From sequence record ON287376.1: a stretch of DNA of 64,000 nt, one strand, 5' to 3'. This document shows positions 6,876 through 38,886 of the stretch, in pieces. A program made the position numbers and the translations under genes. The notes below the pieces were generated by a model that searched no databases, was not told the DNA's origin, and worked only from the letters and a program-made list of their open reading frames with translations. Position 1 is the first letter of the stretch, and each line of letters starts with the position of its first letter.

Positions 6876-7237
6876 CTCGCTATGAACGTATTGAGTTTCT
6901 CCTTAAGTCAACGGGTTCAGATATTAAGGTAGTTCGTCGTAATCTACCGAAGATCAGCGATCTGCTTCGTAAGAAGTGGAATACTCGCGGTCTGATATTT
7001 GATGCCATTGATTCTAATGGCCGTGCATTAGAGATGCGCCTGCTTCTTATCTACTTCAGAATCCCTGAAGGTAAGCTGTTGAAGTTAAACTGGCGTAAGT
7101 TTAAGAAATCTGTATCCAAGGAACTAGGTCAGGAATTCGTCCAATGTTTCAATCGCCCCAAACCGCATTGGATCGTTTCAAAGATCTCTGAGGATCGCGA
7201 CTACTTTAATGTCTGGGTTTCAGATAAAAAACCATAG
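6869..7237 (+). CDS. Hypothetical basic protein
   Basis: 122-aa ORF overlapping the previous stop. Confidence 0.6.
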   Translation: MLTRYERIEFLLKSTGSDIKVVRRNLPKISDLLRKKWNTRGLIFDAIDSNGRALEMRLLLIYFRIPEGKLLKLNWRKFKKSVSKELGQEFVQCFNRPKPHWIVSKISEDRDYFNVWVSDKKP

Positions 7238-7257
7238 TGCCTCCGAAAGGACGGCAC

Positions 7258-7290
7258 AAAAGAAAGGGCTTCGGCCCTTTCTTTTTTTTT
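7258..7290. terminator. Bidirectional intrinsic terminator
   Basis: aaaagaaagggc-ttcg-gccctttcttttttttt between convergent genes. Confidence 0.85.
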
Positions 7291-7304
7291 GCTTTTTTGA
7301 TGAC

Positions 7305-8576
7305 TTAGTCGATGCACTTCTCGATCAGGTCAAGTTCTGCGTTAGCCACTTTGAAGAAGTGACTGGTGTACGCAGCTACCGGGCCGGTGTAGCAACGAGT
7401 GTACATGCGAGACATGGAGTTAACCAGAGCCCACATGGAACGAGTGTCTTCGCCTTCCAGGATCCAGGTGATAACACCAGACAGTTCAGCAGATGCCCAG
7501 TCGATGTTTGCCATGGCGTTGGTTTTGGAGAAGGTTGCCAGGGTACCTGATGCAGTTTTCAGTTTACGGATGATGCCAGTTGCACTGGACTTATCCATGC
7601 CCTTGAACTTAACGGCGGAAGAGTGGTCGTTACTGGCCGGTCCGATATCAACCAGAGTCTTCTTAGCTGCGTTAGGGATCTGGTTAGCTTCAGTTACCTG
7701 AGTACCGAAGTTAGAACCCACGTAGAAAGAACCCAGCTCTTTGGAGTTTTCACCGTACAGACCTTTGGCTTGTTTCTGGAAGTCGTTGAACAACTTAACC
7801 AGTTTGCCACGCAGGTCATCGCGCAGGCGGTCGTTGTCTTTACCGCGGCCAGAGTTACGAGCAGCCTGGACTACTACTTCCAGGAATTTGTCGTATTCAC
7901 CAGCGGTCAGTTTGGACAGACCTACACCTTTACCCTGGACATCTTTGATGAAGGTTTCCACAGCAGAGTTCAGGGCAGCGGCGTTATCGATCTGATCATT
8001 ACCTACGGTCAGGGCGCGTTTAGCCAGAGCTTTAGGAACGTCGACTTCTTCTTTGAATTCGCCGGAACCTACTTTACTTTCTACTTCCTGAATGCGTTTC
8101 TTCAGAGCACCCAGGCGAGTGAAGGTTGATCTCATAAAGTCGGTGAAGGCATCTTTCGCAGATTCTACCAGATCACCAACGGCGCCGACCAGGGCTTTGA
8201 TTTTGTCCTGGAAGCCTTCCAGGGAAACGGTGGAGTCTACATACGCTTCCATCGAAGGCATGACTTCTTCCACTTCGATGCCGGTGCCGTCCAGGTTAGC
8301 GGCGGTCGCTTGTTCGATCAGTGCAACTTCGTTGATCGGGGTATTTTGGTTTGGGTTGATTTCGCTTTCGATGAACTCGCACATGTCGGTCATGCGATCG
8401 GCGCGGTCGGTCAGATTCTCTGACTCATCCAGGCGGTCAGCGATACCGTTGCGGCCTTCTTCCAATTCAACTGCCAGTTCGGCGTCATCGACATAATCAG
8501 GGATCTCGATTGATTCAAACGCTGGGCAGGAGAATTCTTCGCGTTTCTGTTGGATGATATTCCGGGTGTGTTTCAT
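7305..8576 (-). CDS. phiKZ-type internal head (ejection) protein
   Basis: Acidic ~120-aa propeptide ending in SME|AYVDSTVSLE|GFQDKIK, i.e. S-x-E prohead-protease sites, followed by an amphipathic helix as in the phiKZ internal-protein family. Confidence 0.8.
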   Translation of the reverse strand: MKHTRNIIQQKREEFSCPAFESIEIPDYVDDAELAVELEEGRNGIADRLDESENLTDRADRMTDMCEFIESEINPNQNTPINEVALIEQATAANLDGTGIEVEEVMPSMEAYVDSTVSLEGFQDKIKALVGAVGDLVESAKDAFTDFMRSTFTRLGALKKRIQEVESKVGSGEFKEEVDVPKALAKRALTVGNDQIDNAAALNSAVETFIKDVQGKGVGLSKLTAGEYDKFLEVVVQAARNSGRGKDNDRLRDDLRGKLVKLFNDFQKQAKGLYGENSKELGSFYVGSNFGTQVTEANQIPNAAKKTLVDIGPASNDHSSAVKFKGMDKSSATGIIRKLKTASGTLATFSKTNAMANIDWASAELSGVITWILEGEDTRSMWALVNSMSRMYTRCYTGPVAAYTSHFFKVANAELDLIEKCID

Positions 8577-19900: not shown

Positions 19901-20070
19901 TTTCCCCTTGATTCTATGATTCCGGGAAGTAAGCAGTACAAATAATCCCTCCCTTTTGGGAGGGATTCTTAAGAGGGTCGTCCCTCTTTTTTTGTTCCCT
20001 TATTTTTTCAAATACTCTTTAAATAGTTTAGTAACAACTAGACTATCACCCCTCCTTTAAGGAATAAACC

Positions 20071-20229
20071 ATGCAACAGTCAGCACCTGCTAATGTAGCA
20101 GAAGTAAAACCAGAGAACGCTTATTTCGAATCTGGTTCAAACGAGCAACCTGTGTCAGTCTCTCAATGCGACTTTCATTACGGTAGCCTGGACGGCCTGG
20201 CAACCATTATGGCAAACCCTCAGCACTAA
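20071..20229 (+). CDS. 52-aa hypothetical protein (not in ORF track)
   Basis: AAGGA RBS; MQQSAPANVAEVKPENAYFESG...NPQH. Confidence 0.6.
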   Translation: MQQSAPANVAEVKPENAYFESGSNEQPVSVSQCDFHYGSLDGLATIMANPQH

Positions 20230-20240
20230 GGAAAATAAAC

Positions 20241-20510
20241 GTGACTAAAGATCTTTCTTCCTATTTCAAACCAGCCGCCGATTCTACTGCTCTGCCAGGC
20301 CAAACTCGTGGCGAAACTAAATTAACAACGACCTTCGACGAGCTCCCGGTAACTGGCGCCGGCGCAAAGGTTATCGATCAAAGCGGTGATTCCCTGGACT
20401 CTTTGTTCGATGGTATCGATTTCGATGCGGTAGCTGCTCGTAACGAAGAGCGGGCTGAAAGCGGTGAAGAGTTCGTCGATGACGGCGACTGCGAAGGCTG
20501 CAAGATCTGA
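20241..20510 (+). CDS. Acidic disordered protein ending in an NrdA-like CxxC redox tail
   Basis: C-terminus EEFVDDGDCEGCKI; AAGGA RBS, GTG start, highly biased codons. Confidence 0.75.
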   Translation: MTKDLSSYFKPAADSTALPGQTRGETKLTTTFDELPVTGAGAKVIDQSGDSLDSLFDGIDFDAVAARNEERAESGEEFVDDGDCEGCKI

Positions 20511-20543: not shown

Positions 20544-20622
20544 ATCGAATCAGTCGATTAAATCGAGAGTAGGATTTTCCTACTCTCTACTATTTTACAA
20601 TTTAGTTTAGAGAGATTTACAC

Positions 20623-22295: not shown

Positions 22296-24652
<2,357 letters not shown>

Positions 24653-25037: not shown

Positions 25038-25970
25038 ATGTACGATTATCCTGTTAATGATAAAAACGTTGTAGTCTTCTATCACGATAGCTGCATGGAC
25101 GGCTTCGCAGCCGCTGCGCTGATGTATACTCGTTATCCATTGGCCACGTATCAACCAATTAACTACGGTCGTCCTAATACTCTGGACGTCGAAGGTAAGG
25201 TAGTCTTCTTCGTAGACTTCTGCCCTGACACTGAGTGGACAAGCGCTAACTGGGAAAAGACCCAGCGTTGCATTCTACTCGACCATCACAAAGACTCTAC
25301 TGACCGTGCTGGTCATGCGAAAGAGCACATGCGTCCAGGTGACCACATCGGTTTCGATATGGCTCACTCAGGTGCAGGCCTGGCATGGGAATACCTCTAT
25401 CCAAACGAACCAATGCCGCCTATGGTTAAATTGGTAGAACTGCGTGACCTTTGGTTACTTACCCCGGACATGCGTAAGTATCACGAGTACTTCGCTACCT
25501 TCCTGGCTAAGGGTGAACCGGATGTTATCTTCCCGCCGTTCGTTAAAGTCCTTTACACCCAAGACCAAGCTGGTGTAGATGAAATTACTGCGATGGCTGA
25601 TATCCTGGTCAAAGCACGCGATCAGCAAGTAGAGTGGTTCATGAAGAATGCTACTTGGTGGTATCGCGGTCAGGTTATTCGCGGCCCTAAAGGTCAAGTC
25701 GATACCACCATCGCCGTTCTGAACTGCCCGCATATCTTCATCTCTGAGGTTGCTTCTCAGATCATGGAGAAGAACCCGCGTGTTGATCTGGTGATCGGTA
25801 CAAGTATTAGCGGCAAGGGTATGGGATTCAGTTTCCGTTCTCGTGCCGGTTCCGGGTTAGCGTCCCATGTAGCTAAGAAGTTCTCTGGTGGTGGCCACCC
25901 TGATGCAGCAGGTGGTCGTTGTGCAGGTATTAAGAGTTACGAAGAACTGGTGAAAGAGGCCTGTGAATGA
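25038..25970 (+). CDS. DHH/DHHA1 family phosphoesterase
   Basis: YHDSCMDGF, FVDFC, LLDHHK, RDLW, SFRS and GGGHPDAAG. Confidence 0.92.
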   Translation: MYDYPVNDKNVVVFYHDSCMDGFAAAALMYTRYPLATYQPINYGRPNTLDVEGKVVFFVDFCPDTEWTSANWEKTQRCILLDHHKDSTDRAGHAKEHMRPGDHIGFDMAHSGAGLAWEYLYPNEPMPPMVKLVELRDLWLLTPDMRKYHEYFATFLAKGEPDVIFPPFVKVLYTQDQAGVDEITAMADILVKARDQQVEWFMKNATWWYRGQVIRGPKGQVDTTIAVLNCPHIFISEVASQIMEKNPRVDLVIGTSISGKGMGFSFRSRAGSGLASHVAKKFSGGGHPDAAGGRCAGIKSYEELVKEACE

Positions 25971-28349: not shown

Positions 28350-29219
28350 TTAGATACCGACACCGCCTTTGGACATTTTCTGCATCCACTCAACGTAACC
28401 AGTATCAGCAGCAGCAACGTCAGCTTCTGCGGATTGCAGGAAGGCCGGACGGGTGTTGATGTCAATACCAGTTTGACGAGCGCGATCCAGGAACTGCTGG
28501 CCCAGTTTACGAACACCGTCACCTACTTGCTGAATACCAGTGAAGGTAATCGAGTGAGTTACGGATTCAGGGGTAGCGGTGATGTCACGGCTACCTTCGT
28601 TACGTGGACCCTGCATTGGCATCATGTTGGTAACCAACCATGCTTCCTGGCAATAACGCTGAGATGCATCCGGCTCTACGAAGAGTACGGTGAACGCAGT
28701 GTAGTCAGGGTAACTGGTACCAGGGGTGATGTTGCCTTTGGCGATGATGCCTGGAACGTTACTCTCTGGGTTACCCAGGAAGTAAATGATGTAGCGCTGC
28801 CAGAAGTTCAGGACCGGACGACCGATCTTCTCTACCCACTCGAACTGAGGAACAGAACGAGCGCGGCGAACTTTAGCCAGAGACTGCATCATCTCACCAG
28901 AACCACCGAACGGGTTTTCGACGTATTCAACGTCCAACGACTGATCCAGGCCGGAGATAGAACGCGGGTGCAGTTCGATCAGGGCCTTCAGAGCTGCTTG
29001 CCATTTCGCCGGGTCATCCGTATCCAGCATTGCTGCAGGACATTCCAGAAGGAATGGGATAACCGGACGACGGGTGTAGTCAGCTGCACCGTGGTAGTAA
29101 CGGAAATCAGGAGCGTACCCCATCATGCCTGAGTTAGGCAGGTTGGTTACGGGCCCGAAGGACCCGTTGACGTACGCTGTGTTGGAAGGGAGAATGGTAT
29201 TTGGATCTTTCTTAGCCAT
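28350..29219 (-). CDS. Tail tube protein (phiKZ gp30-like)
   Basis: ~290 aa directly after the sheath; T4-gp19-like LFVEPD...EAWLVTNMMP pattern. Confidence 0.88.
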   Translation of the reverse strand: MAKKDPNTILPSNTAYVNGSFGPVTNLPNSGMMGYAPDFRYYHGAADYTRRPVIPFLLECPAAMLDTDDPAKWQAALKALIELHPRSISGLDQSLDVEYVENPFGGSGEMMQSLAKVRRARSVPQFEWVEKIGRPVLNFWQRYIIYFLGNPESNVPGIIAKGNITPGTSYPDYTAFTVLFVEPDASQRYCQEAWLVTNMMPMQGPRNEGSRDITATPESVTHSITFTGIQQVGDGVRKLGQQFLDRARQTGIDINTRPAFLQSAEADVAAADTGYVEWMQKMSKGGVGI

Positions 29220-31290
29220 TCGCTAACTCCTCGGCGGTATAAGCTACGGACGACATGTCCAATACGGTACGCATGTGGTTCGCACCGAAATCAACACGCA
29301 ACGACCAGCTGTAACCACGTTCACGGTCACCGTCGGTGATCTGAGCATGAGGGATATAACGCAGACGGTTATCGAAGGCGTTTGCACCGCGATCAGTTAC
29401 GATCTTCTCGGTACGTTCCAACAGCTGATCGTCAGACAGTTTACCGTTACCCGACAGATCACGCCATGCATCGAAGCCGAAGCGGTTGATGTTGGCAACC
29501 AGCAGACCAGTCATGGAAGACTTCAGCACAGAACCAGGTTCTGGGTAGAAGCTCTGCTGACCGGCATAGAACTGGGAGCGGGTGTCGTAGTCTTCCACGT
29601 ACACCAGACCACTTGCCCACTGACGGCGTTTTACACGCCAGGACTTGTCGAGGTTGGTTACGTTTTTGACTACTTGAACGATACGGTTCGCACCGTCGTC
29701 GATCGCGTTTTCAGATTTCAGTACACCGTTAGCTGCGCCGGCATAAGAGCACATTGCAGCGAAACGGTCCAGGTTCAGCGGAACACGGAACTTGCGAGTA
29801 GTACCGGTGTAGTCGCCACACTGACCTACGATCTGACCACGGAATGCCGGGGTAGCGAAATCTGTAGAATCAGGGAACTGTTGGACACGGGTCAACAGAG
29901 ACAGAGCGATGGACTCTTCTTCTTCGTTGGTGTTGTCCGGGAGGCTGATATCCTGTGTACACAAGCTGATCCAGGTATCAGCACGGAAGCCGATAATTGC
30001 CGGGATGAGTTGCTTGGTAGCCAGATCGTAACCGGAGTCCCAGAAGGCGTTGAACGGATAACGCGCCATGTTGCTCAGGTTGATACCGGTGTTGCTGGTC
30101 AGGTTACCCAGGATTTTAGCCACTGCCTTGTTAAAGGAAGCGTTACCCAGAGTACCGTCACCACCACCTACCATGTAGAAGGATGCGTTCTCAGAGAGAA
30201 CAGTACCGCCTTCAGAAACCGGCTGGATTTGCACAGTGTGGTAAGGTACGCCTTCCACAGTTTGCGCGCCGAACAGGTTGATCTCGTACAGGTCATCCGG
30301 GTTGTCAGAGACAGCCGGGTTAGCCGCAGATTCCAGAGCCTGGATTTCTTTCAGCAGCATGTCTACGTTAGCCTGGTACAGATAAGGCTTATCGATTGGA
30401 GATTCCAACCAAGTAGACGGGTCGCTATCGTTGTAGCGCTCATCGATGCGTTCAGCGAAATCGTAAACGATCCCGGTTTCACGGTCGATGGTGTCAGTCC
30501 CCAGGCTTACCAATACGGAAGATTCCTGAGACAGAGTCTCAAGGATTGCCGGAGAAGACAGTTCGTTTTCACGAACCAGCATCTGGAAGCGATACAGGAA
30601 AGACTTCAGTCGAGCTTGCAGATCGGAATCTGCCGCTTGACGAGATTGGGTGGTCGGAGCCCAGATGCGCAGTGCGGTGTTTGGACCCAGAGACGATTTG
30701 TCGCGAGCGATCCAGTCTACCAACGGCAGCAACTGAGATTTACCCGCGGTGTCGTCACCCAGGGTACCGTCGGATTTTTCACGGCGGCCGTACATTGTTT
30801 GTTGGCTATCTTTGTCAACCGGAATCGCGCCGAAATGGAACGACATCAGGATGCCAGGGATAGTGGTACCAGTTGCTTGCTTCTGGCCATTGGAGTCCAG
30901 AATGTAGCGACCTTCTTCGTCGCGTTTGTATTCTGGAAGATCTTTCTTCATCCAGTCTACAGACAGACCGAGAGTTGCTGGGTCGGGAATATCTTCCGGC
31001 TCAACACGCATTGCCAAGAACTGGTTGCCGGCTTTACGCGCTTCGATAACGAATGGCGTAGAGTGAGTAGCATAAGGGGAGTTCAGGTCAACAGCTTCGG
31101 AACCGAAGATATCTTCGAACTTGTTCGGGTCGATCCACATCGGCGTAGTTGGCCCTTTCCGCGAGAAGAACGGAATCAGAGGACGGTGCAAAGGGAGCGT
31201 GGTTGGTGCCCCAGTGCTACGCTGATAAGATGTGTCCCGAGTACCCCGATAATAAATATTGGGAGTAGAGCTTGTGATTTGCTCAGACAT
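29212..31290 (-). CDS. Contractile tail sheath protein (phiKZ gp29-like)
   Basis: 692 aa; RGTRD, LPLHRP, YPFNAFWDSGY motifs; synteny with tube and terminase block. Confidence 0.92.
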   Translation of the reverse strand: MSEQITSSTPNIYYRGTRDTSYQRSTGAPTTLPLHRPLIPFFSRKGPTTPMWIDPNKFEDIFGSEAVDLNSPYATHSTPFVIEARKAGNQFLAMRVEPEDIPDPATLGLSVDWMKKDLPEYKRDEEGRYILDSNGQKQATGTTIPGILMSFHFGAIPVDKDSQQTMYGRREKSDGTLGDDTAGKSQLLPLVDWIARDKSSLGPNTALRIWAPTTQSRQAADSDLQARLKSFLYRFQMLVRENELSSPAILETLSQESSVLVSLGTDTIDRETGIVYDFAERIDERYNDSDPSTWLESPIDKPYLYQANVDMLLKEIQALESAANPAVSDNPDDLYEINLFGAQTVEGVPYHTVQIQPVSEGGTVLSENASFYMVGGGDGTLGNASFNKAVAKILGNLTSNTGINLSNMARYPFNAFWDSGYDLATKQLIPAIIGFRADTWISLCTQDISLPDNTNEEEESIALSLLTRVQQFPDSTDFATPAFRGQIVGQCGDYTGTTRKFRVPLNLDRFAAMCSYAGAANGVLKSENAIDDGANRIVQVVKNVTNLDKSWRVKRRQWASGLVYVEDYDTRSQFYAGQQSFYPEPGSVLKSSMTGLLVANINRFGFDAWRDLSGNGKLSDDQLLERTEKIVTDRGANAFDNRLRYIPHAQITDGDRERGYSWSLRVDFGANHMRTVLDMSSVAYTAEELANG

Positions 31291-31325
31291 GGTGTTGCTC
31301 CGTATACAGAGTGATCTTACGTAAG

Positions 31326-31335
31326 TATGTACATA
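31326..31335. promoter_or_regulatory. Palindromic TATGTACATA, putative divergent late promoter pair
   Basis: Gives TATGTA on both strands between the divergent sheath and 31400 genes; the phiKZ late promoter core is TATG. Confidence 0.5.
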
Positions 31336-31399
31336 TCACGTGTGACATTACGCGTCATAATAAGCATTTAAGCCTTAGTTAAACATTTGGAGAGTAGAA

Positions 31400-32335
31400 A
31401 TGTTCAAACGAACCTACGATACTACCGCAGGAAGTATCCACTACCAGAACACTTTACCAGGTCGTCTGCTGGTAGCAAAAGCAGAACAAACCCTGACTGC
31501 AGATCTGATCCCTGGTATCCCTGACCTTTACTGTCTGGTAGAGAAGTCTGCTCGTACCGACATGATCCCGACTTTCTTCCACTTGATGAAAGTCTCAGCT
31601 TCCGCCAATGAAGCGCCGTTCTACGTTATCGACCTGCGTCCTTATCGTAGCCAACTTCGTGACGGTGGTAATGGTCGCCCTATCCTGTCTAACGAAGGTA
31701 CTGTTGGTCACTTCACTCGCCGTGCTCTGCTGGAAATGCATTGGGACAAATTCGGTGGTCGTCCTCTGCTGTTCGCTGGGGATGTTCCGGTAGTTATCTT
31801 CGCACGTTGGATCGGCGGTCTGCTTCGTAGCCGTTTCAATCTGAACGAAGAAAGCTCTCCGCGTGTTCAGGTGTTTGCAGCTTACTACTACATGTGCCTG
31901 CACTTTAATAAGGAAGACTTCACTGCTGATTCGAACAAAATGCTGGCCGTTCGTATCTCACGTGCTCTTCGTCTCCCTGTACAGAAAGTCATCGACTGGG
32001 TAGCACCGCTTCCTTATTTAGCTAACCTGGACGACTTCTGCAATATCGCTCTGGTTAAGAACAGCGGTACTGTAGCGCTAAGCGGTATTGACCGTCGTGT
32101 TCTCTGGGCCATGACCGGTACCGGCTGGTTCGGCTCCGCTGATACTAAAGAAGTATTGGCTGTCTCTCTGGAGTTCCCTCCAGCGTTTGTTTCCATGGTT
32201 TATACCGGGACTACCGATCGCCTGGCTCGTAAAGCTGCTCTCAGTCAATTGATTGAGAAAGAAGGTCGCACCCTGGGTGCACAGGCTTACTGTCAGCGGA
32301 TCGATGGTCTGATTCGTGAATTGAAAATCGTTTGA
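31400..32335 (+). CDS. Virion structural protein (phiKZ gp28-like)
   Basis: Size and position divergent from the sheath, matching the conserved block. Confidence 0.75.
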   Translation: MFKRTYDTTAGSIHYQNTLPGRLLVAKAEQTLTADLIPGIPDLYCLVEKSARTDMIPTFFHLMKVSASANEAPFYVIDLRPYRSQLRDGGNGRPILSNEGTVGHFTRRALLEMHWDKFGGRPLLFAGDVPVVIFARWIGGLLRSRFNLNEESSPRVQVFAAYYYMCLHFNKEDFTADSNKMLAVRISRALRLPVQKVIDWVAPLPYLANLDDFCNIALVKNSGTVALSGIDRRVLWAMTGTGWFGSADTKEVLAVSLEFPPAFVSMVYTGTTDRLARKAALSQLIEKEGRTLGAQAYCQRIDGLIRELKIV

Positions 32336-32342
32336 TGCTAAG

Positions 32343-34910
32343 GTGCGCGACATGAATAGTCTTACAGCTAGTTATTTACTCGATCATGCGCGCACTAACC
32401 TTTGGTGCGCACCATTCCAAGACCGACAGGTCATCTTAGACCTGACCCGTATCAGCCGAGATGGCGGTGCTTTGCAATCTATCCTTGTTCAATGGACAGA
32501 TATTCCACTGCCTACTAAGGATGAGTTCTACCACGTTTACCAGATCGGTAACAACAGTAGCTGGCGTACTAACTTGCCTGACCAACGAAACATTTGGTTC
32601 CAGATGAGTGCATGGTCTGCTACGGGTAATCTCATTACTGACCTCTACCTGAACAACGGGGAAAGAATCCCTACCTTCAGCAGTTACGTCCTTCGTACCA
32701 AGAATGACAACTTGATTGTCGCAGTGAAGCTGTATAAGTCTCGCTGGAATCTGGACGAAGACAATCTCTACCTCCGCATTTACAACAACGCCTTCTTCTC
32801 CTCTAAACGCTCAGCAACGATCGAAACGAAAGTTGCCTACGGCGGTGGTGAATACAAAACCCCTAATGATGGGAAAACGTGGCGTGACGAAATTCGTGCA
32901 TGGCGTAAGAAACGCGGCATCGTGAACGTATTCGTCAATGGGGTATGGGTAGACGATTTAAATCTCTCTGCGATGGTTACAGGCGATTTGGTCGAATGGG
33001 TTTATGACAGTGCTGTCTCCCGTATCGTTGACTTTAAGTTGACGTCGTTACCGGACTTCACTTCTACCTTAGATAAAACGAAAAAGTATTTGCTCCACCC
33101 CAGTAAGAACTCTCATGAGGAAATGATCTACTATCGTGACGATGTGGACGTTTACCTTTATGCCAAGAGTGGTGATGGCAACGACAAGTTGATTGGTCGT
33201 TATTACCAGCGTAACCGAGAAGACTCGATGCGCATGGTCACTCACGCCGACTACTCGATCCCAACGGGTTACATCTACAACTACGTCGTTGATGGGTGGA
33301 CTAACCGTGACAACTTCTACATCCGTTTACATCTGCGTGACAGCGGATTTAAGCGTCCTCTCATTAATGAGGTCAACCGTATCCAAACTCTGTATCGTTT
33401 AGACGATATGGATATTCTTCGCGCTATGCTGGGCATTGATGCGACGATCAAGGAATGGAAGGTTGAGAATCTGGAAGAGTCCATGTACACCGCTATCATG
33501 CGTGACCAGTACGCAACCTTCACTGCAGAAGACGTAGTGAACGCTTACGGGTATAACGCATTGGCTAAGCTGTTTGCTGACACCCCAGTAGAGAGTAACC
33601 CGGATAGTAATGGTGACTGGGCGCAAGTGCCATTCGGGATTCAACAAGGCGGGACATTCTTCGAGTACACCAAAGATGGTAAACTCTTAGGATGGAGTTT
33701 TGACGGGTTCAGCGATCGCTTCTTTACCAAGTTCGAAGGGACTGGAATGGTAGAGATGCTCATGGGTCACGGTAGAAAGGATATCAACTGGAATCCTTCT
33801 AACGACGATTTCCAGATGGGCGACAAGTACCAGTATTACTTCTTCGTAAGTCCAGTCAAGAACGGAGTTATTACCGGAGCATGGCGGCCTGCAGAGGAAG
33901 GTAAGGACTACATGGTTAGTCCTAATGGACTGGTTACCTGGATCCACGTAAAAGCGCGTAATATGGGTTTGGTGCTCTCTAACGAGTACTTCCTCTGTTA
34001 CACCCAGGATGTTAATCCGTCCGATGGCATCATGCGGTTCTCCATCACCCACTCTAATCAGCTGGGTACCGTACTTCCTATCCAACCTGAAGTTCTCGAT
34101 ATCTTCCAAGGGAGTTACTCGCTTATTGAAGGTTTGGACTATATCGTAGAGTGGCCGGTAGTTACGGTCATCACTCCGCGTTACAACGTGCCGGGTGATG
34201 TGCAGCGGTTTACCATTCGCGGTATGGGCTGGGAGACTCCGACTGTTAAACGTCGCAAGCCAGATGATGCAGGGTTCGCTTACCAAGGAATCTTGAGCCT
34301 CAACGGTCGCTTCGATGTACGTGACGATAAAGTCATGCGTTGCGTTGTTGATGGTAAGCTCGGGATCGCAAGTGAATTGCCATTTGCTGAGAACTACGGT
34401 AAGCCAGGAATTATTACTGTCCCTAATGGTACGGCGTATTCAGAAATGACCATGTACGTTCCGCTGTTCGGTTTGCCCACTAAACAGAATGAGATCCTCA
34501 TGCTGCGTGGTGAAGAAAGCGATAAGCGTTTGAGCGATTACATGACGCTGAAGTACCCGGAAGTAGTGGTAGAAGGCCCGAACCCGATTGAGGAACATTA
34601 TCGTCTCTTCAGTCCGTTGATCACCCGCCTCTACTATGAAATCAACTTGGGAACATTGACTCCTCCGTCCAATCCAAAAGATCGCGTAACGCTCTCTAAC
34701 GTGATCAATGATTATCTCGATTACTTGAACATCGACCCTTGTCGTTTCGATTTGAACGAGAACTATCTGCGGATTGATTGTCACCCGTTTGACGATATGC
34801 TTCCTATCGATAAAGCAACTTGGCTGTTCTTCGAGCAGGTTAACCAAGTGTACCTTCGTGGGAAACTCAAGTTAAATAGCTTCTTCATCATCAAGGACAA
34901 AACTGTATGA
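32343..34910 (+). CDS. Virion/baseplate structural protein (phiKZ gp27-like)
   Basis: 855 aa, NLWCAPFQDRQ N-terminus, conserved block. Confidence 0.8.
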   Translation: MRDMNSLTASYLLDHARTNLWCAPFQDRQVILDLTRISRDGGALQSILVQWTDIPLPTKDEFYHVYQIGNNSSWRTNLPDQRNIWFQMSAWSATGNLITDLYLNNGERIPTFSSYVLRTKNDNLIVAVKLYKSRWNLDEDNLYLRIYNNAFFSSKRSATIETKVAYGGGEYKTPNDGKTWRDEIRAWRKKRGIVNVFVNGVWVDDLNLSAMVTGDLVEWVYDSAVSRIVDFKLTSLPDFTSTLDKTKKYLLHPSKNSHEEMIYYRDDVDVYLYAKSGDGNDKLIGRYYQRNREDSMRMVTHADYSIPTGYIYNYVVDGWTNRDNFYIRLHLRDSGFKRPLINEVNRIQTLYRLDDMDILRAMLGIDATIKEWKVENLEESMYTAIMRDQYATFTAEDVVNAYGYNALAKLFADTPVESNPDSNGDWAQVPFGIQQGGTFFEYTKDGKLLGWSFDGFSDRFFTKFEGTGMVEMLMGHGRKDINWNPSNDDFQMGDKYQYYFFVSPVKNGVITGAWRPAEEGKDYMVSPNGLVTWIHVKARNMGLVLSNEYFLCYTQDVNPSDGIMRFSITHSNQLGTVLPIQPEVLDIFQGSYSLIEGLDYIVEWPVVTVITPRYNVPGDVQRFTIRGMGWETPTVKRRKPDDAGFAYQGILSLNGRFDVRDDKVMRCVVDGKLGIASELPFAENYGKPGIITVPNGTAYSEMTMYVPLFGLPTKQNEILMLRGEESDKRLSDYMTLKYPEVVVEGPNPIEEHYRLFSPLITRLYYEINLGTLTPPSNPKDRVTLSNVINDYLDYLNIDPCRFDLNENYLRIDCHPFDDMLPIDKATWLFFEQVNQVYLRGKLKLNSFFIIKDKTV

Positions 34911-36628
34911 CTGTCTTGAAAACGACTGGCGGTTTGCCTTACGTTACAGGACTTACGGATACCACACCGGGCGATGTCCCGGTTTGGAACCCCAAGGCCC
35001 TGTGGCAGTATCGGCACATCAGTGAAATTTATAGGGGTCGTGAAAATATTGGCCAGGGTAATATCGGTCGTTATGTCCCTAATAAAGGCGATAAAGTATT
35101 TGACCCAGAAACGGGCGATTACCTGGTATCCGAAGTTGATCAATCAACTCTGCTCTCTACGTTGATCTCTTATACGCCGCCGACCACCGAAGGTTCCAAT
35201 CTTCCTGATAAACTCCTCGGTGTTGGTCCGCGTTATCCGCAGGCCGGTTACTTTGTCTACGTTGACAGTACCGTTAACCCGCCACGGATGAGTTTCGACT
35301 CCATGCTTCACTACTACTCTAAGAGTGCGATTAAAGTTCGCGTCTATGCTGGAGAAGATATTACTTCTAACCCAGAGGTATTGTCTGCATGGTACGATCA
35401 GTCCGGTGTTTATCGTGGTGACACGATTGACCTGGTTAAGGTAAACGACATTGCCGGTAATGCCGACTACAAGGTTCCTCTGGAAGCCTGGTCTAAACGA
35501 CCAATCAAACAGGGTGAATCCGTCATGGTTGTCTGCTACAGCGCGGAAGGTATCCCTACTTCTAAAGTAGTGATGCGTGCCATCGACTCTGGTATCATCC
35601 GTCAGAACAACACTGCACAGCGCGAGATCCACTCTATTGAGTTGGTATCTAGTTACCTGTCACCTACCGATAAGACTCGTCTCCTGATTCCTTCTCAGGC
35701 TCTGATGGATTCTATCGACCTGGGTTGCCGGGTTACTTACAGCGACGGTACTGTATCTCCACTGAAACCGATCGATGACTCTAAGATTCGTCTATCTGGT
35801 TTCCGTGAGTACGTGTCTACTGAAGTTGGTCGTGAGAACCCGCTGACGCTGTTCTATCAACTGGATAGTACCGAGAGTTATTCCGGCACCAACACTTCGG
35901 CTAATGGCGTGGTTGCAGTTCGTTACACGATCGAAACAGTTGCTGTCCGTAACGCATTTGCTGTTAAGCTGTTCATGTATCCTTACTGGGTAGATGATAA
36001 CAACGGCTACCGTCTGCGCTTCTGGCTGCATTCCCTGGATCGTCTGTCGATGTACGACGTGACTAACTTGATCGAAATCTCTCCGAGCTCAGCTACCTGG
36101 GATCCGAAAGGTTACGGGATTAAACAACACATGCAGTTCGACTTGGACTTGTCTCGTGTTGATCCTAGCTATCAAGCGTATCGTCACACTCAACGTAACG
36201 ACATCTCTCTGGTTCGTGACGGTGTTACCGATGACGGTACTGCTTGGTTCGTTAACTTCGAGAATGGTGACGAGGACTACGGCGGTGGTTTGGAATGTCG
36301 TCTGAAGTTCGTGAGTTCTCAGAACTGGAGCGTCGATATCGCTGCTCAGGCTAAAACCCTGGAAGAGTGGCTGGATCGCGTTTACTACCGTACTCACCCT
36401 CTGTACGATAGCAGCAACGAACTGGCACCTCCGGCTCCGACTCACTTCGTACTGGTTGTTGACGGGATGCGTGTACGTCGTCCGATCTCTGATTGGAACC
36501 AACCGTTCACTGTTCCTACCGGTGGTAAAGTTGGTGATCTGGCAGCAGTTCACTGGATCAAAGAAGTCGACGATGTCGATTTGCAGTTGGGTACTAGCGG
36601 CTTCATTATCCGCCAGAACATCCCATAA
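34907..36628 (+). CDS. Virion/baseplate structural protein (phiKZ gp26-like)
   Basis: 573 aa, ATGA-coupled, upstream of the terminase. Confidence 0.8.
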   Translation: MTVLKTTGGLPYVTGLTDTTPGDVPVWNPKALWQYRHISEIYRGRENIGQGNIGRYVPNKGDKVFDPETGDYLVSEVDQSTLLSTLISYTPPTTEGSNLPDKLLGVGPRYPQAGYFVYVDSTVNPPRMSFDSMLHYYSKSAIKVRVYAGEDITSNPEVLSAWYDQSGVYRGDTIDLVKVNDIAGNADYKVPLEAWSKRPIKQGESVMVVCYSAEGIPTSKVVMRAIDSGIIRQNNTAQREIHSIELVSSYLSPTDKTRLLIPSQALMDSIDLGCRVTYSDGTVSPLKPIDDSKIRLSGFREYVSTEVGRENPLTLFYQLDSTESYSGTNTSANGVVAVRYTIETVAVRNAFAVKLFMYPYWVDDNNGYRLRFWLHSLDRLSMYDVTNLIEISPSSATWDPKGYGIKQHMQFDLDLSRVDPSYQAYRHTQRNDISLVRDGVTDDGTAWFVNFENGDEDYGGGLECRLKFVSSQNWSVDIAAQAKTLEEWLDRVYYRTHPLYDSSNELAPPAPTHFVLVVDGMRVRRPISDWNQPFTVPTGGKVGDLAAVHWIKEVDDVDLQLGTSGFIIRQNIP

Positions 36629-36771: not shown

Positions 36772-38886
36772 ATGATACTGCACAAAAAAGATTGGGATAA
36801 GTTCCCCAGCGCAATTCCGCATATTACGACAAAAAATAAATCGTTCAAACGATTCGTCGGTGTGCTGCAGAAAATGGGGATCGAGAACTGTTGGTGGCCT
36901 TTGGCACTGCTCAACCCGGAGTTGGCTAATGTCGACCCATTCGACCCTAACCTGACTGACTCGCAGAAAGCAGCAGTCAAACTGGAAGCTGAATACAACA
37001 TCTGGTATTACCTGAGGGAATGCGTTCTCGTACCTAACCCTGCAGGTGATGGTGGCGATATGTTCCGTGCTAACCGTGCGAACATGTCCTTGATCTGGTC
37101 TTACATGAATCACGTAGCATATCTTCTGATTCAGCCTCGTCAGACCGGTAAATCAATTTCCTCTTACGTACTGTACAGCTGGTTACTTTACATCAAGTAT
37201 CGTAAGACTCGTATCTCCCTGGTAACTAAGTCGGATGAACTTCGTGCTGAAACCACAACTAAGGTTAGACAGATTCGCGAGCTTCTTCCTCCGTACATGA
37301 CCATTACGGATAAGACCGATACCATCGCGGGTGACAAGGCTACTTACAACGTTCGTCAAAACTTACTGGCTGTTGCGGTATCGCGTTCTGACCCAGCGGG
37401 TGCTAACAAAGTTGGTCGTGGTAACACCTCCCCTACGGTAGGATGGGATGAGGCCCCCTTCATTACCCACATCAAGATTGCATACACCGCAGCAATGCCA
37501 GGTATGAACGCCGCGATCAAAGCAGCGCGTGACCGTGGTATGCCATACGGTACCATCATGACAACTACTGCCGGTGAGCAAACAGACCGTGACGGTGAGT
37601 TCATCCACAAAATGTGGACTGAAGCAGCTCCATGGACTGAACACTTCCTGGACGCAGGGGATCAGGATAAACTGGAAGGGATGGTTAAGTTATCCTGTAA
37701 AGGCCGTCAGGTTCTGATCAACGGTACGTGGTCACATACTCAGGTTGGTGTTAGTGACCGTGAGCACTACGATAACATGGCACGTGCGCAGGCTGATGGC
37801 CCAGAGGCAGACCGTGACTTCTTTAACATCTGGACTTCTGGCGGTGCTAATAACCCATTGGATAAAAGTATTCTGGCTCAGATCGTTGCAAGTCAGCGTT
37901 ACTCGGATTACTCTGAGGTATTCGCTGGCGGGTATGTTATCCACTGGTATTTGAGTAAAGAAGAGTTAGAGGAACGCAGACCTAACCTTCAGATGATTGT
38001 GGGTGCCGATACCTCCGAAGGTGGTGGTAACGATGCCTTGACGCTCATCTTCACTGACCCGTATGATTTGTCGGTGCTAGGTACTTCGGTTATTAACGAG
38101 GCTCTTATTCCTAAGTACGCTGAGTTCCTCCATCAGATGTTAGTCCGTTATCCTAAGTCAGTCTTTATTCCTGAACGTAAATCAACCGGTCAAACCTTTA
38201 TCGACTACTTGTGTATCATGCTGCACAAAGACGGCATCGATCCGTTCACTCGTATTTTCAACACCATCGTAGACGAGGCGGACAGTGACCGTGTTGCATT
38301 CCAGGAAATAAAAGGGTCGATGGATCATCGCGATGACTCGTTCTACATTCGTCGTAAAACAAAGTTTGGTTTCTGTACTGGTACCACAACTCGTCGTACT
38401 CTCTACAACGAAATTCTTCAGATTGCTGGTAAGAAAGGTGCGAGTCGTGTCCATGATAAAGTACTGATCTCAGAACTGACTGGACTGGTGTCTAAGAATG
38501 GTCGTGTCGACCACGCTTCAGGCAAACACGATGATACCGTCATCGCATGGTTGCTGAGCGTTTGGCTGTGCGTATACGGTCGTAACCTCGATTACTACGG
38601 TATCGATGCACGTCGTGTAATGACACGTGCTCTGGAAAGCTCTGGGATGTCTAAGGAAGAAGAACAGCGTCACATGGACATCGAAGCGTTGCAACGTCAG
38701 ATTGAAAGTACCCTTGAGCAACTCAAGAGTGCAGATAGTCCAGCGTTGGCTATTCGCTACGAGAAACGAATCACTCACCTCAGCGAGATGTTAAGTGAGA
38801 TGGGTATCGATTCTGTAAACATCTCAGGTAAGATCGAAGAGATCAATGACGAGCGGAGACGTAAGGTTTACAACAACTATTACTAA
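36772..38886 (+). CDS. terL: Terminase large subunit (phiKZ gp25-like)
   Basis: Walker A QPRQTGKS, Walker B WDEAPF, nuclease GADTSEG and HDDTVIAWLL. Confidence 0.95.
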   Translation: MILHKKDWDKFPSAIPHITTKNKSFKRFVGVLQKMGIENCWWPLALLNPELANVDPFDPNLTDSQKAAVKLEAEYNIWYYLRECVLVPNPAGDGGDMFRANRANMSLIWSYMNHVAYLLIQPRQTGKSISSYVLYSWLLYIKYRKTRISLVTKSDELRAETTTKVRQIRELLPPYMTITDKTDTIAGDKATYNVRQNLLAVAVSRSDPAGANKVGRGNTSPTVGWDEAPFITHIKIAYTAAMPGMNAAIKAARDRGMPYGTIMTTTAGEQTDRDGEFIHKMWTEAAPWTEHFLDAGDQDKLEGMVKLSCKGRQVLINGTWSHTQVGVSDREHYDNMARAQADGPEADRDFFNIWTSGGANNPLDKSILAQIVASQRYSDYSEVFAGGYVIHWYLSKEELEERRPNLQMIVGADTSEGGGNDALTLIFTDPYDLSVLGTSVINEALIPKYAEFLHQMLVRYPKSVFIPERKSTGQTFIDYLCIMLHKDGIDPFTRIFNTIVDEADSDRVAFQEIKGSMDHRDDSFYIRRKTKFGFCTGTTTRRTLYNEILQIAGKKGASRVHDKVLISELTGLVSKNGRVDHASGKHDDTVIAWLLSVWLCVYGRNLDYYGIDARRVMTRALESSGMSKEEEQRHMDIEALQRQIESTLEQLKSADSPALAIRYEKRITHLSEMLSEMGIDSVNISGKIEEINDERRRKVYNNYY

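Follow-up and report, generated by a model that had tools for sequence, protein, structure and literature searches.

Why would a phage encode a small, acidic, free-standing protein that ends exactly as the large subunit of class Ia ribonucleotide reductase (RNR alpha, NrdA) ends? We use "the window" for the whole stretch of DNA that was analysed, 64,000 nucleotides from record ON287376.1. A first-pass annotation made from its letters had drawn attention to an 89-aa acidic ORF with a good ribosome binding site, ending in DDGDCEGCKI and containing no further cysteine, and each of these points was confirmed. The ribosome binding site reads AAGGA, the product has a pI of 4.05 (20 Asp+Glu versus 8 Lys+Arg), and its only two cysteines are Cys84 and Cys87, with no histidine in the chain. 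The last cysteine lies near the carboxyl end, followed by Lys-Ile and the stop codon. The locus, all on the plus strand, is organized as follows.

19971-19988, plus strand: terminator-like hairpin followed by a T-run, terminating the preceding gene; a small two-gene unit begins after it
20071-20229, plus strand: upstream ORF of 52 aa; its Totoro copy is 45 aa long and has the C-terminal half and one cysteine in common with it
20228-20232, plus strand: Shine-Dalgarno sequence AAGGA, 8 nt 5' of the GTG and overlapping the stop of the 52-aa ORF
20241-20510, plus strand: mini-protein gene, 89 codons with the TGA stop included in the coordinates; GTG start, ORF intact
20241-20297, plus strand: residues 1-19, N-terminal stretch kept in the jumbo-phage copies Totoro, P0022 and P0031
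20298-20375, plus strand: residues 20-45, low-complexity insert missing in the Totoro orthologue
20391-20459, plus strand: residues 51-73, conserved acidic/hydrophobic helical module, the presumed docking element
20460-20507, plus strand: residues 74-89, acidic linker and RNR-alpha-type tail
20490-20492 and 20499-20501, plus strand: codons of Cys84 and Cys87, then Lys-Ile and stop
20565-20597, plus strand: terminator-like hairpin with a 10 bp stem, then a T-rich run, which ends the two-gene unit

The upstream 52-aa ORF is probably co-transcribed with the mini-protein gene. It was rejected as a conserved partner, as no homologue was found outside Moabitevirus among the compared loci. Conservation of residues 1-19 among the jumbo-phage copies supports the GTG start, and residues 20-45 appear dispensable because they are absent from the Totoro orthologue. 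Using an alignment of 22 sequences, AlphaFold2 predicted a disordered chain (mean pLDDT 57, pTM 0.21) in which residues 51-55 and 61-73 form two short helices and the tail is unstructured. The protein lacks a hydrophobic segment. A Pfam search with the ORF returned no match, in agreement with the earlier statement that the NrdA core is absent.

Serratia phage vB_SmaM-Kodama (275 kb, Moabitevirus) contains the window region with 100% identity; Moabite, 2050HW and other phages match it at 99%. Kodama is a phiKZ-like jumbo phage: ORFs of the window match the phiKZ gp28, gp29 and internal-head-protein families, and the Moabite annotation includes a PhuZ-type tubulin and multisubunit RNA polymerases. 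The 89-aa gene is annotated or conserved across all Moabite-like phages. Its orthologue in Totoro is shorter (63 aa, 57% identical), retaining the N-terminal 19 residues and the entire C-terminal half. Over the 63 aligned codons, Kodama and Totoro differ at 12, 6 and 33 first, second and third positions, respectively, with 23 synonymous and 13 non-synonymous codon differences, a pattern which indicates that the 89-aa gene is under purifying selection. Together, the conservation among Moabite-like phages, the third-position bias and the retention of the terminal motif across the wider family described below argue for more than a chance ORF.

These data bear on one explanation, namely that the ORF goes untranslated or is a functionless remnant of the 3' end of nrdA. 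Its similarity to NrdA is indeed confined to the 3' end, but the gene carries a ribosome binding site, a start and a terminator of its own, and the differences between Kodama and Totoro are concentrated at third codon positions. No nrdA-like sequence flanking the gene was found anywhere in the Kodama genome by tblastn. Its phage relatives belong to three unrelated lineages, and putative relatives of fixed length, 43 codons, are present in at least 103 bacterial species, the bacterial copies likewise differing mostly at third positions. We regard this explanation as extremely improbable. The first-pass annotation had already doubted that the ORF is a simple 3' remnant, and its independent expression signals, purifying selection and presence in nrdA-less lineages bear this out.

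The last seven residues of the window protein are those found at the extreme C-terminus of class Ia RNR alpha from both phages and bacteria. Four RNR alpha ORFs with this end were checked against Pfam and proved to be full-length class Ia enzymes: they are 748-781 aa long and contain ATP-cone, all-alpha and barrel domains, and one of them belongs to T4-like Klebsiella phages. BLASTP aligned residues 71-89 of the window protein with the last 17 residues of that Klebsiella phage enzyme (11/19 identities, pairwise E 0.002), so the RNR-like tail proposed earlier is upheld by both comparisons. E. coli K-12 NrdA ends somewhat differently, in an acidic run followed by Cys-Glu-Ser-Gly-Ala-Cys-Lys-Ile. 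This CX4C end was present in 120/120 Enterobacterales NrdA clusters, including those of Salmonella, Enterobacter, Klebsiella, Erwinia, Pantoea, Pectobacterium and Brenneria, and it shares with the window protein the acidic run, Cys-Glu and the Cys-Lys-Ile end. Searched against E. coli NrdA and a phage NrdA, the window protein gave overall the tail plus one short weak stretch; the tail of E. coli NrdA was missed by BLASTP because of the CX4C gap. In class I enzymes generally, the tail carries a Cys pair with a CXXC consensus, the E. coli CX4C type being in the minority; this pair reduces the active site and is in turn reduced by thioredoxins or glutaredoxins (PMC9669993). The RNR alpha tail shuttles among the active site, the beta subunit and TrxA (PMC11903788).

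How specific this ending is was gauged from a DNA scan for the pattern D-C-[D/E]-G-C-K-I-stop in a 596-Gb genome collection and a viral collection. With equal base frequencies the pattern is expected by chance about 1e-11 times per position, or about a dozen times in the 596-Gb genomes. The 120 genome matches listed comprised 111 acidic tail-carrying proteins, 2 RNR alpha ends, 1 antisense artefact ORF, 1 match without a stop and 5 chance-like matches. The viral collection yielded 112 matches: 13 RNR alpha ends, 30 acidic tail proteins, 9 fusions to a gp49_66 domain, 57 instances of a single antisense artefact and 3 chance-like matches. At least 15 ORFs from the scan place the tail after the conserved Tyr-Tyr-x-Asn of the RNR barrel. 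Chance-like singletons (5/120 among the genome matches listed, 3/112 among the viral ones) fit the chance expectation, and the tail pattern is both rare and specific.

Further upstream, the resemblance to RNR fades. Profiles of the phage and chromosomal groups with the tail masked did not recover RNR alpha tails, and hhalign of the module profile against the tail or the whole of E. coli NrdA gave no significant alignment, with one acidic stretch on the tail at E 0.076. On the basis of these negative results, the demonstrable likeness to RNR is limited to roughly the last 8-19 residues. When the helix module was compared with the tail of E. coli NrdB, the other subunit, we observed only a vague acidic/hydrophobic likeness.

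That statistical similarity to RNR ends at the tail would be compatible with a convergent origin, in which the protein is a metal-binding or otherwise unrelated acidic protein, such as a nucleic-acid mimic or a clasp that holds zinc or iron between two chains. The terminal CxxC could supply half of an intermolecular metal site, and the protein is strongly acidic. Convergence is unlikely, however, to recreate seven consecutive residues of real RNR alpha ends, with the final Lys-Ile among them and the stop at the same position, and there are just two cysteines in the protein. Pfam, NCBIfam and PADLOC offered no match that would favor such a role, and the sole PHROG match is of unknown function. 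We consider this explanation highly unlikely.

The window protein belongs to a family. The first-pass annotation had suggested looking for other small proteins with an acidic CxxCK end, and these turned out to be numerous, comprising about 45 clusters across phages as well as a chromosomal gene in at least 103 species. The phage proteins are 37-103 aa long, occur in jumbo phages, Chaseviridae and Autographiviridae, and share a layout in which an acidic/hydrophobic helix leads via an acidic linker to the terminal Cys-x-x-Cys-Lys-Ile, directly before the stop. Using tblastn and profile searches, we found that the conserved module corresponds to the C-terminal 35-40 residues, which recur in small ORFs of very different phages. 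Among jumbo phages, the module is carried by Moabitevirus and Erwinia jumbo phages. In Chaseviridae it is found in Loessnervirus (Y2, Berlingot and others), where some members consist of the module alone (37-42 aa), and in Autographiviridae it is found in Koutsourovirus, with an additional N-terminal four-Cys cluster. Both cysteines are invariant in every family alignment and the terminal Cys-x-x-Cys-Lys-Ile is invariant or nearly so, in line with the earlier expectation that CxxCKI would be conserved in orthologues; one family member, P0039, has CX4C spacing.

Profile searches identified 30 clusters of family members, and an exhaustive HMMER scan of 1.84 billion representative proteins returned 26 at E <= 0.001. 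All but one of the latter are 38-98 aa long (25/26), the exception being P0047, a 462-aa protein with the module at its C-terminus. A family profile with the tail masked still found the window protein (E 5e-11) and phage mini-proteins that had been picked by their seven-residue end alone (E 1e-5 to 1e-3), indicating that the family is defined by more than its tail. PHROG 10239, a 47-position profile, matched residues 57-89 weakly (E 1.9e-4). Other family members match it too; it is unannotated and of unknown function, and it spans part of the diversity of the mini-protein family. Neither Pfam, NCBIfam nor PADLOC contained a match for the family. With PADLOC, the window protein, the Serratia 43-aa protein, a gp49_66 fusion, P0047 and P0003 were all without a match, and a known anti-phage defense or counter-defense protein was ruled out on this ground. 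Sequence searches of the PDB with the protein and with the module profile gave chance matches only, NrdA not being among them, and a literature search on the motif or on phage proteins acting on RNR tails found nothing relevant.

Several other identities were considered and set aside. Membership of the NrdA family was ruled out because neither the barrel (Ribonuc_red_lgC) nor the all-alpha N-domain is present, the flexible tail being the only NrdA feature. A thioredoxin-fold oxidoreductase (Trx, Grx or NrdH) was rejected for lack of a Pfam or NCBIfam match and of an AlphaFold2 fold, the CxxC lying in a disordered end. A zinc ribbon or zinc finger needs four ligands, and the protein has two cysteines and no histidine. 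No radical SAM enzyme or cyclase was found near the gene in Kodama or near other copies, and the chromosomal copies are monocistronic, which argues against a RiPP precursor. Some tblastn matches pointed to a spanin (Rz/Rz1), but these fall in a separate small ORF that overlaps the start of the spanin-annotated gene, and the window protein has no hydrophobic segment.

If the tail is an RNR tail, which enzyme could it serve? One proposal in the first-pass annotation was that it complements a tail-less phage NrdA, to be recognized by a missing tail in the nrdA of the same genome. Kodama, however, has no nrdA at all: neither nrdA nor nrdB was present in its whole-record annotation or in positions 1-50,000 of Moabite. 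By annotation and tblastn, no class I RNR alpha or beta was found in the complete genomes of Kodama, Erwinia phage Berlingot and Enterobacter phage Entb_48, and the proposal therefore fails for Kodama and the two other carrier lineages. The tblastn queries were E. coli NrdA, E. coli NrdB and one phage NrdA; the best hit on the three phage genomes had an E of 0.13, and positive controls gave E = 0. Class II and III enzymes were judged by annotation. A 151-aa gene labelled "ribonucleotide reductase" was dismissed, as it has a weak match, under the Pfam cut-off, to an NrdI-like flavodoxin. The three phages do carry thymidylate synthase or salvage genes. In 3/3 lineages, each represented by one complete genome, the free-standing tail thus occurs without a class I RNR, so any RNR partner must be the host's.

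Two observations lie outside what had been noted for the locus before: a putative homologue on host chromosomes, and the same tail on unrelated phage domains. The chromosomal counterpart was found in at least 103 Enterobacterales species, always with a length of 43 codons among the matches listed, in Pantoea, Erwinia, Serratia, Rahnella, Sodalis, Tatumella, Hafnia, Ewingella, Budvicia and other Enterobacterales. Its product has an acidic/hydrophobic motif at the N-terminus, then a helix and an acidic linker before the identical tail. Between copies, the mean pairwise difference per site is 0.14, 0.15 and 0.48 at the three codon positions, and the Pantoea gene has a ribosome binding site and its own terminator. 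The copies are monocistronic and their neighborhoods vary between genera, with ylaC and cvrA in Serratia, yedI and yodC in Pantoea, and cstA and nhaB in Hafnia. Given the lack of a match in Pfam, NCBIfam and PADLOC, the product of this 43-aa gene would add a new small conserved protein to those of plant- and insect-associated as well as clinical enterobacteria.

BLASTP of the window protein against the Serratia 43-aa copy gave 14/29 identities (pairwise E 1e-5), tail included. With the tails masked, the chromosomal and phage groups were joined solely via intermediates, at weak E values of 0.009 to 3.6. The last 35 residues of one Pantoea stewartii copy are the same as in a phage copy from IMG/VR, and for this reason the gene appears to be mobile between phage and chromosome. 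The gene is absent from the yedI-yodC interval of E. coli K-12, the position that it occupies in Pantoea, and no complete E. coli genome gave a blastn match to either the tail-coding DNA or the Serratia chromosomal gene.

The same linker and tail terminate nine Phage_gp49_66-like (N4 gp49 / Sf6 gp66) proteins in viral contigs. These carriers are 118-125 aa long, four are Pfam-confirmed, and the domain itself contains cysteine in 5/5 sequences. The module also forms the C-terminal end of P0047, whose fold is unknown. Since the same tail is attached to these unrelated domains, its client need not be RNR. It may instead be a general electron arm coupled to thioredoxin or glutaredoxin, a portable module serving whatever partner the N-terminal part has. 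On this explanation the client would be the protein's own domain in the fusions, and in the mini-proteins a partner docked by the helix. The domain cysteines of the gp49_66 carriers, the end of P0047 and the four-Cys cluster of the Koutsourovirus members would all accord with a client other than RNR, as would the neighborhoods examined, in which no nrd, trx or grx gene lies beside any phage or chromosomal copy. Against it, RNR alpha is the sole protein with a known function for this exact tail, the minimal members of 37-43 aa have no domain of their own, and the neighborhoods differ between genera and yield no client candidate. We consider such an arm for clients other than RNR unlikely.

The reading that we tentatively prefer, while placing it at somewhat less than an even chance, is that the window gene encodes a translated, disordered, acidic, free-standing copy of the class Ia RNR alpha redox tail that may act in trans on the host RNR and its thioredoxin/glutaredoxin axis. 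In such a mechanism, Cys84 and Cys87 would cycle between dithiol and disulfide, would be reduced by host thioredoxin- or glutaredoxin-type reductants that recognize the RNR tail, and would hand electrons in trans to the active-site cysteine pair of host NrdA. The acidic helix at residues 51-73 would serve as the docking element, and the net effect would be that the phage taps the re-reduction half-cycle of host dNTP synthesis. No acceptor for an RNR alpha tail is known other than the cysteine pair in the active site of RNR alpha. The invariance of both cysteines favors a working redox couple over mere binding, and the disorder predicted by AlphaFold2 and the free tail add to the likeness to an RNR tail. 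The mini-protein and the class Ia RNR alpha tail share the last seven residues, the preceding acidic run, predicted flexibility and a terminal Cys pair. They differ in that the mini-protein is detached from a catalytic barrel, has its own conserved helix ahead of the tail, resides in RNR-less genomes and has CX2C rather than the CX4C of the host enzyme. Both this mismatch in spacing and the absence of nrd, trx and grx from the gene neighborhoods count against a role as an arm for host RNR. The benefit of an extra free tail is also in doubt, because the tail tethered to host NrdA is itself present at high local concentration. The evidence for the mini-protein family and for where it occurs is strong; its mechanism is our inference.

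Binding to the same partners could alternatively be non-productive. As a brake or decoy, the free tail would fill the substrate/tail pocket of NrdA or tie up thioredoxin or glutaredoxin, capping RNR output. This could keep the phage below the threshold of dNTP-sensing defenses or handicap co-infecting phages that have a CX2C-tailed RNR. The small disordered protein Sml1, which inhibits RNR in yeast, offers a precedent. In their CX2C spacing the free tails match phage RNR alpha, such as the T4-like Klebsiella enzyme, in contrast to the CX4C of host NrdA, and the phage copies sit among early or accessory small genes, once on a 16-kb locus with a Tad3 family gene. Moreover, binding of tail and substrate in the RNR active site is mutually exclusive (PMC11903788), and several defense reverse transcriptases are reportedly triggered by the rise in dNTPs caused by phage NrdAB (bioRxiv 10.64898/2026.10.27.754916). 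On the other hand, a strong inhibitor would harm Kodama, Berlingot and Entb_48, which, being without an RNR but equipped with thymidylate synthase or salvage genes, depend on the host dNTP supply. A free tail in its reduced state would be no sink for thioredoxin or glutaredoxin, and the strict conservation of both cysteines suggests genuine redox turnover. A brake or decoy is a possibility to be taken seriously, although we judge it rather unlikely.

Small proteins of this general kind are known from yeasts. Sml1 and Spd1 are small disordered regulators of the RNR large subunit that interfere with the action of the R1 C-terminal tail, Sml1 by competing with it, and their inhibitory role has been shown experimentally. 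They resemble the window protein in size and disorder and differ in being eukaryotic and in having demonstrated inhibitory activity. To our knowledge, neither carries a tail-like Cys pair. Classical RNR peptide inhibitors mimic the C-terminus of the beta subunit, block subunit association and contain no cysteines. They provide a precedent for a free RNR tail acting in trans, whereas the window protein copies the alpha tail instead. By extension, the mini-proteins could form an unrecognized bacterial class of trans-acting regulators of ribonucleotide reduction, functional counterparts of Sml1 made from a freed redox tail, encoded by Enterobacterales chromosomes as well as by RNR-less phages, and used in host-phage or phage-phage conflict over dNTPs, a broader idea that we hold to be unlikely. 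If it were true, these regulators might keep a phage under dNTP-sensing defenses or disable the CX2C-tailed RNRs of competitors.

The availability of DNA precursors is governed by RNR, itself a drug target, and how its flexible alpha tail reaches the active site and the reductants is still under study. A natural, selectable free-standing tail, if that is what the window gene encodes, would be a ready probe of the re-reduction half-cycle of RNR and would imply a new level at which dNTP synthesis is controlled, or sabotaged, in infected cells. Such control is topical because several defense systems are reported to sense phage-driven changes in dNTPs. Collectively, our findings point to an undescribed way to tap or tune DNA-precursor synthesis.

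Modular exchange of RNR electron-delivery parts has been encountered elsewhere. In Facklamia ignava, a glutaredoxin fused to NrdB has been reported (PMC6187632). There, as here, parts of the electron-delivery pathway are shuffled as modules; in F. ignava the reductant is joined to the enzyme, while in the mini-proteins and the tail fusions it is the enzyme's arm that has been freed or fused elsewhere.

A conserved 43-codon gene whose product shares the architecture of the phage protein and carries an identical tail was found on the chromosomes of Enterobacterales, including Serratia, Pantoea, Erwinia, Rahnella, Hafnia, Sodalis, and others. Four copies are given below, with coordinates as positions in each compared locus (L-number), and at least about 100 more loci fall within L017-L136.

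Copies of the 43-codon chromosomal gene
L020:6205-6333, + strand
L056:3805-3933, + strand
L043:4021-4152, + strand
L075:1077-1205, - strand

Differences in this gene lie mostly at the third codon position. Its flanking genes vary from genus to genus. The Pantoea copy is equipped with a ribosome binding site and a terminator of its own. The gene had no matches in Pfam, NCBIfam, or PADLOC, and a blastn search of all complete E. coli genomes did not find a counterpart. The last 35 residues of the Pantoea stewartii chromosomal copy (L074:4412-4540, - strand) are shared with a copy on an IMG/VR viral contig (L202). This common end suggests that the P. stewartii copy is prophage-borne, and that the family gene has been exchanged between phage and chromosome.

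Family members also occur in other phages. Those of Koutsourovirus have an extra N-terminal Cx3Cx3Cx4C-Pro cluster plus a fifth Cys ahead of the tail, and in these phages the gene directly precedes the one for the phage RNA polymerase.

Koutsourovirus members
L003:3851-4135, + strand
L253:25619-25816, - strand

In Erwinia phage Y2, a 40-aa member (L001:3983-4105, + strand), unannotated in the original record, overlaps the start of gp40, an Rz-like spanin according to RefSeq. On one metagenomic phage contig, a family member shares a 16-kb locus with the gene for a Tad3-family protein (L013:1-720), among many small accessory genes.

The tail is not confined to free-standing proteins. Some Phage_gp49_66 proteins (PF13876), 118-125 aa in length, share the acidic linker and, after it, terminate in D-C-[D/E]-G-C-K-I, which suggests that the tail is a portable module. 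All five of the tail-bearing sequences read also have a Cys within the domain.

Tail-bearing Phage_gp49_66 proteins
L183:1913-2266, - strand
L165:2822-3178, - strand
L173:1753-2106, + strand
L246:8801-9175, - strand

The entire helix-linker-tail module forms the C-terminus of P0047, a 462-aa protein known from short metagenomic contigs (L010:1378-2766, + strand), which ends in Cys-x-x-Cys-Thr-Ile and had no match in a Pfam search.

A 133-aa Cys/Ser/Arg-rich ORF whose last seven residues also fit D-C-[D/E]-G-C-K-I (L141:6839-7240, + strand; about 57 similar IMG/VR loci) is an artefact, antisense to a 173-aa gene (6895-7416, - strand) conserved in related prophage-like contigs. The Kodama gene annotated 'ribonucleotide reductase' (record 120465-120920; L007:20465-20920, + strand) matches NrdI-like flavodoxins only weakly (E 1.3e-4, under the Pfam cut-off), in a genome that lacks RNR. 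BLASTP aligned residues 44-55 of the 89-aa protein (window 20370-20405) to E. coli NrdA residues 226-237, with identities of 7/12 to this NrdA and 8/12 to a phage NrdA (pairwise E 0.07-0.11); this likeness is probably due to chance, since conservation of these residues does not extend across the family.

Upstream of the 89-aa gene, a 52-aa ORF (window 20071-20229, + strand) has a stop codon overlapping that gene's ribosome binding site. It is conserved in phage Totoro as 45 aa, with the C-terminal half and one Cys in common; no homologue was found beside other family members. Further genes of the window are as follows.

Other features of the window
22577-24652, + strand, 691-aa ORF, syntenic with a Totoro gene that carries the annotation NAD-dependent DNA ligase
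25038-25970, + strand, DHHA1-domain protein
28350-36628, phiKZ-type structural genes: tail tube, gp29, gp28 vertex protein, DUF7193
36772-38886, terminase gene
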